A stretch of DNA of 64,000 nt from Magallana gigas (taxonomy: Eukaryota), in assembly GCF_963853765.1 (NCBI RefSeq), contig NC_088860.1:23126001-23190000 (forward strand), given 5' to 3'. A model generated the notes under the pieces. The model did no database searches. It had not been told where the DNA came from and saw only the letters and a list, made by a program, of their open reading frames with translations. The translations under genes were made by a program, and so were the position numbers. Positions 9,615 to 11,801 of the stretch are shown here, piece by piece (the first letter of the stretch is position 1; each line of letters opens with the position of its first letter).

Positions 9615-10153
9615 CTACAAACACCTAAATCTGACCTTATCAATGGTACAGAGGCATTTGTTGTCAACACAATCAATATTATCTACAGGACAGTGGATGG
9701 TGAAGAATAAGATCAGGACATTGGTGTTATGTTGGTTACAGTCTAACCTTGAGGCACAGGTTGAGTCTAAAAGCAAAGTTCTACATTTAAATTTCATATA
9801 AAACAAACCAATTTTTGAAATCTGCAAATATATTTCGTACTGAAGGAATGAATTTCAAAGACAATCATCTTGTGTGCAATCAGATAAAATGTTGACATTA
9901 TATTTTAGATTTTGCATATATTATTAACATCATTTAATTCACATGAAATTGTCTTTGATGGGAATAGATCAAATAATATTAATTAATATATACATAATAT
10001 ACATGTAAATGTAAATTGAACGAGGTTGAAAGGAATGCACTTACTTATAAGAGAAGATCGTTTTCCAACTGCGTTCTGGAGTGAACTTTCCGAAGCATTG
10101 ATGAGGGTTCCACCAACGAACGAACAAAAGACTATGAAAATGAAACACAACAT
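9615..10153 (-). CDS. Candidate secreted Cys-rich prepro-peptide, 86 aa
   Basis: Exon 10045-10153 (ATG 10153, donor A|GTAAGT) joins in phase 1 to exon 9615-9766 (acceptor tttgcttttag). Product: MLCFIFIVFCSFVGGTLINASESSLQNAVGKRSSLINSTCASRLDCNQHNTNVLILFFTIHCPVDNIDCVDNKCLCTIDKVRFRCL*. AATAAA at 9572-9567. An alternative donor at 9635 leaves the C-terminus uncertain. Confidence 0.68.
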
Positions 10154-11801
10154 ACTTGCTGGGACGTCCAGATTTGTCTATGACACATGAAGCATTAGAT
10201 AAGGTGCAATCAAAATAGAATTATGGTGTCAGCCACTGCACAAAATACTTTGATGGCGTCTGTGGTTGAATATTGTTGTTTCCTTTTTTTTAAATATTTG
10301 TTTTGATTTTTATGATTGAATATGTTATTTTCATTATTTCAACTGATTTTAACTGCATTAACAAGTGCAAACGTGTAGGAATTCACAGGTACTTTAATAA
10401 CCTTTGTTATGGTTCAAACACTTCGAGCACCTTGATAACCTACATTTTCAAATTCTCAAGCAATGTCACTACATATTGCCTCCTCACCGTCATCATGTTG
10501 TGAAATATGTTTGTTGATGTAAAACAATAATTTGCTTCCATAACAAGTACGCAAAAATTACACAACACCTTCACAATTTTCATTTTTTTTTTTTTAGATA
10601 TTTCTTGAAAATTGATTTTGAGCGCAATTCAACTCTTTTTATAATTCATTGCCGGACAAGAGTTAAAATTTTCATATCAACTTTTAGAATTTCGTATTTC
10701 AAAGTTTGTCGTTCCTTCGTGGTTATGAAACCCTAATGCTTGTTAGACAGTAAATTTTACCTTAAACACAGTAAAAAAAAACTTGCTGCTCATTCTTAAT
10801 ACAAACTTTATGCTTCATATTTTTTCAGAAAGAAAAAATTAATGGTTTTCTCAAAATAGTTTTTTGATGAGCTTAACCTTTTCTGTAGCCCTATTTTTAT
10901 TATTCTTCACATATGTACTTGTGGAGTTCGCTGCCAGATGAGTTCTTATCTAAAAATGATGTTATTCATTAAGAATAACATACTATCTGATTTTGTTTTT
11001 TTTTAAAAAGGGGGGATGCATGTAATATCTTATTTTTCATTTCAAATGACCTGGGCGGGCGGAGAGGGGGAGGGGTTAGTGGTGGTGTTAACTGAGCACC
11101 AGTTCTATAGTTTTTGTTTTATTAGCAAAGTGCATGTTACGAACGACATATAGTAAAAAGCTTTGGTTAGGATACTAGTATCCCAATAATAAAAAAAATA
11201 ATAAAAACAGAGAAGTAATATCGACAGTCAGCGACTGTCGGAGTAGTAATTAATACAGGCCTGTGTGTGAGCTTGTTGTACTCAAGTGACCGTTAAGGCA
11301 TGTAGGCCTCTAAGACTTGCTTATTGTGATATGGTATCATTTTCTGCGTATTTTTTTTTAATTTTTTTTATTTGTTTATTTTTTTTAACCAAATAAATAT
11401 GTCAGAAAAAATACCAATATTCTCGAAAAGTGACGACCTTTTGTATAATAATGACACACTTTTATCCATAAAATATACCTTGATTATTGAAATCTTTTCG
11501 AGTGATTTTATTTTATATTTAATTTTATATTTCTACATTCCAAATATTTTTTGCTTGCAAAGTAGGTTGAAAGCTACTGCACTTATAACACTGTATCACA
11601 CAGGGTACTCAGAGGTTAAAATGACGAGTTTTATAATGACGTCACAAACTGCAACGTCCCAAGCGAAAAGTTCACGTTTGTGGCTGTTACAGTGGCCCTT
11701 CCATTAATATGAACTTACCCTTAGTATAAGGATAAGATAGGAATTTTAAGGTATAAATCACATCTGCATACAAGGCAAGAAATTAGAAAAATGTAAATAT
11801 A

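Follow-up and report, generated by a model that had tools for sequence, protein, structure and literature searches.

Exons of a supposed prepro-peptide gene in an oyster C-type lectin array as the probable 5' end of a long lectin isoform

An expansion of the C-type lectins, along with unusual domain architectures, has been documented in bivalves (PMC10140915). Among the annotated members in Magallana (Crassostrea) gigas is XP_011428425.3, "type-2 ice-structuring protein isoform X1", which was named "perlucin-like protein" in earlier versions and has a sister isoform X2 (XP_011428424.3) and a UniProt entry (A0A8W8INK4). Here we consider two exons on the minus strand of a 64,000-nucleotide stretch of M. 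gigas DNA (contig NC_088860.1, positions 23,126,001 to 23,190,000, hereafter the window, whose own numbering is used throughout), located between positions 10153 and 9615. A first-pass annotation had read these exons as a hidden gene, nested within an array of lectin genes and encoding an 86-residue prepro-peptide with a signal peptide, a GKR processing site and a Cys-rich domain. We conclude, with a probability of roughly 85%, that the two exons instead open the coding sequence of the annotated lectin (XP_011428425.3 / XP_011428424.3) in its long isoform. The gene is not hidden, as it has been annotated since XP_011428425.1, and it is not a separate gene, the supposed precursor forming the 5' part of the next gene downstream, the lectin previously called CTL-B.

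This identification was made by querying 1.84 billion representatives exhaustively with phmmer, the query being exon 2 by itself (window 9764-9618, minus strand). The search led to a 255-residue protein (P0004) that cluster look-up identified as XP_011428425.3. The cluster contains three RefSeq versions and Ensembl/UniProt models, all with the same 255-residue chain. A word-indexed protein search with the 86-residue product had returned a genomic open reading frame call only, the 255-residue relative being outside the length window searched, and literature searches found no publications naming the accessions or run ids. By tblastn and direct reading, all of the P0004 exons could be placed in the window with 100% identity outside the junction residues. 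The N-terminus of P0004 (residues 1-80) corresponds to the two exons of the supposed precursor as far as ...CTIDK, so the locus is the same, but P0004 has no stop after exon 2. It continues with ITTPQAAKTTT and LLPSSRPKLATTS, which lead into a complete C-type lectin domain; two linker mini-exons and the lectin exons encode this part, and a terminal mini-exon follows. Pfam places residues 132-243 in the Lectin_C family (E=1.3e-17, 64.9 bits against a cut-off of 22.6).

The coding part of exon 1 (10153-10045, minus strand, as are all exons of this gene; 109 nucleotides, phase 1, donor A|GTAAGT; P0004 residues 1-36) contains the ATG, the signal peptide and a short segment with the GKR. The signal peptide call is a direct reading of the sequence, in which 12 hydrophobic or Cys residues in a row follow the Met, and the short N-terminal segment after it is SESSLQNAVGKRSSLI. 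Intron 1 (10044-9767) is 278 nucleotides long, and exon 2 (9766-9636; 131 nucleotides, phase 1 to 0; P0004 residues 37-80) encodes the six-Cys module and closes at the internal donor AAG|GTCAGA. Two linker mini-exons come next, exon 3 (8800-8770; 31 nucleotides, phase 0 to 1) being Thr-rich and reading ITTPQAAKTT, and exon 4 (7901-7860; 42 nucleotides, phase 1 to 1) being rich in Pro, Ser and Thr. Intron 3, between them, holds a long (CT)n microsatellite at about 8455-8390. The lectin domain is encoded by exon 5 (6695-6592, acceptor phase 1), exon 6 (6098-6005) and exon 7 (5752-5530; WIGG...), all placed by the mapping of P0004 and by RNA-derived contigs. Exon 7 carries EPD and WND as putative Ca2+/sugar-site motifs, EPD being a variant of the EPN/QPD-type tripeptide. 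Isoform X1 uses a terminal coding mini-exon at 4523-4490, with the stop inside and the exon extending to a donor at 4478, while isoform X2 uses an alternative one at 4902-4869. The two are mutually exclusive duplicates, each reading ...IG-stop and then ...CTATG|GTA.

The gene thus has two forms, a canonical short isoform without the module and the long isoform from 10153, because the Ensembl models P0017 and P0023 begin exactly with an alternative first coding exon at 7213-7168 (MQKCLSYFSLIFLYH, phase 1), which was also found by scan. In each lectin of the array the first lectin-domain exon is preceded, at a distance of a few hundred bases, by such a short signal exon of phase 1, and 7213-7168 is the one belonging to CTL-B. 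Splicing of exon 1 straight to exon 5 (at 6695) would be phase-compatible, but it occurs in no model, and the lectin owns the nearer first exon. The long isoform is predicted by two independent pipelines, across several assemblies, and mini-exons of 31 and 42 nucleotides are unlikely to have been found ab initio, which we take as support for it. In addition, the product of a spliced RNA contig from a paralogue (P0043) reads ...SIDK|ITT..., i.e. the conserved internal donor is used there.

Two RNA-derived contigs from the locus itself (L002 and L003) are spliced from the exon 4 donor to exon 5 (7860>6695) and across the lectin exons. In both of them the X1 terminal mini-exon continues 12 nucleotides past its stop to the GT donor (4478|4477) and on into the next lectin gene downstream, with 4523-4478 joined to 2476-2372, 989-888 and 446-228 (minus strand), which are exon 2 and the later exons of that gene. 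They represent a transcript in which two lectins are conjoined, with a stop codon separating the two lectin domains.

Much of the first-pass reading was borne out by the sequence. The 36-codon exon with its ATG at 10153, the donor A|GTAAGT (10045|10044) and the acceptor ttttag|A (9767|9766) are all present, and joining the exons in frame gives the quoted 86 residues, including the hydrophobic N-terminus, the GKR, an N-S-T sequon across the junction, and the spacing C-x5-C-x15-C-x6-C-x4-C-x-C. The 10045>9766 junction is used in the RefSeq/Ensembl protein models P0004, P0016, P0020 and P0022, and we judge the claim that the exons are coding, that the product is secretory and that exon 2 is a disulfide-rich module to have been right. 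A chance origin of the whole arrangement is unlikely. When 100 second-order Markov simulations were searched for Cys-rich terminal frames joined, through a pyrimidine-rich acceptor, to an ATG exon that is signal-like and has a GTRAG donor, models with six or more Cys arose at 0.08 per 64 kb and models with seven or more did not arise, although the search thresholds were chosen after the candidate had been seen and the figures are a rough guide only. The window is T-rich, with 31.7% GC, and Cys-rich open frames are not rare in it (among the 537 that are 40 residues or longer, 11 have 6 or more Cys in 50 residues). No paralogue of exon 1 or exon 2 was found elsewhere in the window by tblastn.

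To gauge conservation, six copies of the locus were compared: the window, the haplotype contigs L001, L004 and L005 (92-98% overall identity), and L007 and L008, whose divergence at aligned sites is about 10%. None of the copies has lost the ATG or the open frame, and the six Cys, the GKR, the N-S-T sequon and all four splice sites are likewise intact throughout. Indels in the exons are of 3, 3 and 12 nucleotides only, with none in exon 2, while those in the non-coding flanks are mostly of 1 nucleotide and those of intron 1, which keeps its GT and AG in all six, are of 1, 3 and 6. Among the four close haplotypes, segregating sites make up 2.3% of exon 2 (3 of 131), as compared with 8.3% of intron 1 and 10.6% of the 5' flank. 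Codon differences between the module and its diverged copy are mostly conservative and lie in the hydrophobic x15 loop. The upstream sequence TATTTAAA at 10296-10289, to which attention had been drawn earlier, is not conserved among the copies. Three Logan proteins (P0001, P0002 and P0041) that seemed to offer longer open reading frames were set aside, as W or Q at their stops reflects alternative genetic codes in the calling of open frames; the exception among these readings is L005, in which the stop claimed for the 86-residue product is genuinely TGG.

The six-Cys module has clear relatives. It was matched by phmmer to P0005-P0014 at E=1e-12 to 7e-06 and has the spacing C-x5-C-x15-C-x6-C-x4-C-x-C and the DCNQ.NT ... 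CPVD.IDC core of the family, and in the module alignment three Cys are invariant and a fourth nearly so, the other two being missing only in N-terminally truncated rows. The matches P0003, P0009 and P0015 were rejected as false positives, being translations of tandem repeats. AlphaFold gives the 43-residue module two beta-hairpins at a predicted local distance difference test (pLDDT) score of 80 from a 13-row alignment, while its model of full-length P0004 (19-row alignment, pLDDT 35) is uninformative. Neither a Foldseek search of the PDB with the module model nor a PDB sequence profile search with the module produced any match, and Pfam found nothing in the paralogues P0007 and P0010. The last three Cys of the module (C-x4-C-x-C) align weakly to profile positions 26-47 of the Pfam EB module (PF01683), but at 10.7-12.2 bits (E=0.2-0.6) against a cut-off of 24.3 the score is sub-threshold, so the module is not a member of that family as Pfam draws it. 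The parent proteins hold related units with the spacing C-x6-7-C-x4-C-x7-9-C-x4-C-x-C, and P0010 has one further unit spaced 5/15/9/4/1. From these related units and the lack of any curated match, we therefore regard the module as one variant of an uncurated small disulfide domain family, so far seen in oysters only. All of the significant phmmer matches are oyster proteins.

The kinships suggested for the module earlier fared less well. The cvSI-like serine-protease inhibitors are likewise small, Cys-rich and from bivalves, but none by name or kind appeared among the phmmer, PDB sequence or Pfam matches, in a comparison in which no comparator sequence was used. More generally, no named defensin or cvSI-like protein, and no toxin or neuropeptide relative, was matched by phmmer in the 1.84 billion representatives, by Pfam, in PDB sequences or by Foldseek. 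Neuropeptide prohormones share the order of a signal peptide and then a short segment ending in GKR, but here a lectin lies downstream and there is no array of spacers and peptides, the GKR is not conserved in a paralogous exon (discussed below), and no relative from a neuropeptide family was found. The annotated product does not end after the peptide-bearing region, as a small precursor would, but runs on into the lectin domain.

The relatives of the module, apart from the lectin itself, are oyster proteins carrying a variety of names: XP_034327441.1 ("tenascin"), XP_052712897.1 ("mucin-5AC-like", C. angulata), A0A8W8N8M1 ("EB domain-containing protein") and XP_011427429.2 ("spore coat protein SP96"). 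In these mucin- or "tenascin"-like proteins the module, at 58-63% identity, is followed by an ITT..AA.TT linker exon that aligns with exon 3, with identical exon boundaries, and their PLSTSHP.LTTT linker aligns with exon 4 of the lectin. They differ from the lectin in that the module lies deep within a chain of 400-640 residues, after other Cys-rich repeats, there is a C-terminal CP.CD...GEVCMIR domain instead of a lectin domain, and the GKR is absent. No remnant of that C-terminal domain was found in the window.

A locus encoding such paralogues (L006) is on a different, 57-Mb chromosome of GCA_963853765.1. Three of its module exons have an acceptor and an AAG|GT donor at exactly the positions found in exon 2, and its 31-nucleotide linker exon shares both the AG and the GTACGTA donor of exon 3; the boundaries and phases of the lectin's exons are those of the paralogues. 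At L006 110082-110190 there is a homologue of exon 1, also of 109 nucleotides and phase 1, with the donor A|GTAAGTG and a similar signal peptide, which reads VEKQ in place of VGKR. In the lectin gene, exon 1 ends in phase 1, exons 2 and 3 together form a 1-1 unit (1-0 and 0-1), exon 4 is 1-1, and the acceptor of exon 5 is in phase 1. Because of the splice-site-for-splice-site homology to exons on another chromosome, together with the phase-compatible introns, it is most likely that phase-1 exon shuffling placed a captured cassette of signal, module and linker exons in front of one lectin of the array. The long isoform may be a chimeric lectin of recent origin, perhaps confined to M. gigas, whose cassette was copied from the mucin/"tenascin"-like cluster and gave it a second promoter and a new N-terminal domain; we regard the odds of this fuller account as about even.

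Several other features of the two loci bear mention. In a neighboring gene of the paralogue cluster (L006 110082-114240), the homologous signal exon is followed by a six-Cys exon of ShK-like type, by a Thr linker and by the C-terminal CP.CD...GEVCMIR domain, so one and the same signal exon can precede different Cys-rich modules in this family, which evidently exchanges them. The signal exon has a second copy near L006 116018, with its donor GT changed to GA, and a long open frame at the end of the retrieved L006 sequence (117079-117753) resembles a retroelement Gag-type protein. In the window, a diverged extra copy of the 31-nucleotide Thr-linker mini-exon is found at 10949-10919 (minus strand), about 770 nucleotides upstream of the exon 1 ATG, with its AG and GT intact; the intron downstream of it is closer to the L006 copies than is that of the functional exon 3, and the copy was probably left behind from the source segment that was duplicated. 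In intron 2, a 42-nucleotide stretch (9519-9477) recurs at about 91-93% identity in two unrelated places in L006 and is likely a small dispersed-repeat fragment.

Beyond the observed exon chain, its homology, the conservation of its splice sites and the preservation of its frame, some suggestions can be made as to what the long isoform might do. Read from the N-terminus, it consists of a signal peptide, the SESSLQNAVGKRSSLI segment, the 43-residue six-Cys module rich in beta-hairpins, a linker and the lectin domain. We infer that it would be secreted and probably glycosylated, with the Thr/Pro-rich linker from the two mini-exons probably O-glycosylated and flexible, and that the C-terminal lectin domain, with its EPD and WND, would recognize carbohydrate. 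The N-terminal module, borrowed from mucin-like secreted proteins, might add a second interaction surface, for tethering (to mucus or matrix, for example) or for multimerization, a role modeled on the one it may have in its parent family.

Certain observations count against the long lectin isoform. The contigs L002 and L003 start unspliced within intron 3 and are without exons 1 to 3, and in the protein collection searched there was no spliced RNA contig with the 10045>9766 junction. Support for the long isoform comes, accordingly, from the predicted RefSeq/Ensembl models, the mini-exons, the conservation and the paralogue contig. Selection on the module is weak, as its codons differ from those of the diverged copy at 7 nonsynonymous and 4 synonymous positions; in the four close haplotypes exon 1 varies as much as the sequence flanking it; and among the proteins of 58-446 residues searched, other species have no annotated orthologue that carries this N-terminal region. 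The contigs without exons 1 to 3, the codon ratio, the variability of exon 1 and the lack of an orthologue would also fit a situation in which exons 1 to 4 are the decaying relic of a duplicated fragment, only occasionally spliced to the lectin, with the short isoform from the 7213 exon as the functional product, and the further degenerate linker-exon copy upstream would be in keeping with it. Against it stand an intact frame in all six copies, exon indels only in multiples of three with none in exon 2, and the conservation of all four splice sites and six Cys at about 10% divergence, and we consider decay extremely improbable.

That transcripts might instead end in intron 2, yielding a stand-alone 86-residue precursor that is cleaved at the GKR into an amidated nonapeptide and a seven-Cys peptide, is the first-pass reading itself. 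The open reading frame and an AATAAA (near 9577-9572) are there for it, a RefSeq model of a paralogue (P0027) does terminate in the equivalent intron read-through, and the GKR and its flanks (LQNAVGKRSS) are kept in 6 of 6 copies of the locus, with a single Q-to-K change in L004. However, an AATAAA is expected about once per 650 nucleotides at 32% GC by our own estimate, and every annotated model of the gene leaves exon 2 at the conserved AAG|GT donor (9636|9635), 21 nucleotides ahead of the claimed stop, so that exon 2 is not a terminal exon in any of them and the 86-residue product requires read-through. The "basic tail" VRFRCL with its stop (9635-9615, minus strand) is the beginning of intron 2 and is absent from P0004, P0016 and P0022; nor are its Cys and stop conserved, the stop being TGG in haplotype L005, and the tail reading VRFRF* in L007 and L008, where the seventh Cys is lost and a 14-15-nucleotide indel comes after the tail. 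Outside the locus, comparison lends nothing to the reading of the GKR as a convertase and amidation signal, the homologous signal exon on the other chromosome having VEKQ; cleavage at the KR may occur in principle, with the presence of the residues as its sole support. With no neuropeptide, toxin or inhibitor relative emerging from the searches, such a precursor seems very unlikely. A module-only secreted protein made beside the lectin, from exons 1 to 4 with intron 4 retained, is also improbable, if somewhat less so. One Ensembl model (P0022, UniProt A0A8W8IQM0, 106 residues) has exactly this form, with the signal, the six-Cys module and the linker, a stop just inside intron 4, and a C-terminus different from that of the 86-residue product, and the occurrence of the module family in many architectures suggests that it can work apart from a lectin domain. 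It is, however, one model from one pipeline and may represent an incompletely spliced transcript, and in the window haplotype the frame extends further into intron 4 than it does in P0022. The long lectin isoform remains the reading we prefer.

As a gene discovery the region has no importance, since its exons are already annotated in RefSeq and Ensembl as part of a lectin; what remains new is the chimeric origin and the uncurated module. A domain-based survey of C-type lectins in bivalves would take the protein for an ordinary lectin with a single domain and overlook its chimeric make-up, since the six-Cys module has no match among the curated families. The capture of phase-compatible exons, with homologous splice sites all preserved, illustrates how the expanded lectin repertoire of bivalves can gain architectures. 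If the chimeric account is true, the lectin would be a clean, datable case of exon shuffling diversifying bivalve immune lectins, and one that may also yield a module-only product.

The lectin gene discussed here belongs to a tandem array of five C-type lectin genes on the minus strand with a shared exon plan, at 25666-23401, 21623-17468, 15485-12831, 7213-5530 and about 3536-229, for which the sugar-site tripeptides are, in order, EPN, EPS, SPS, EPD and EPN. Elsewhere in the window, on the plus strand, two long single-exon open reading frames (34922-35542 and 43935-44603) encode products with a signal peptide and an extremely Gly/Tyr-rich sequence with (GGYGGG)n-like repeats, which are probably structural secreted proteins.

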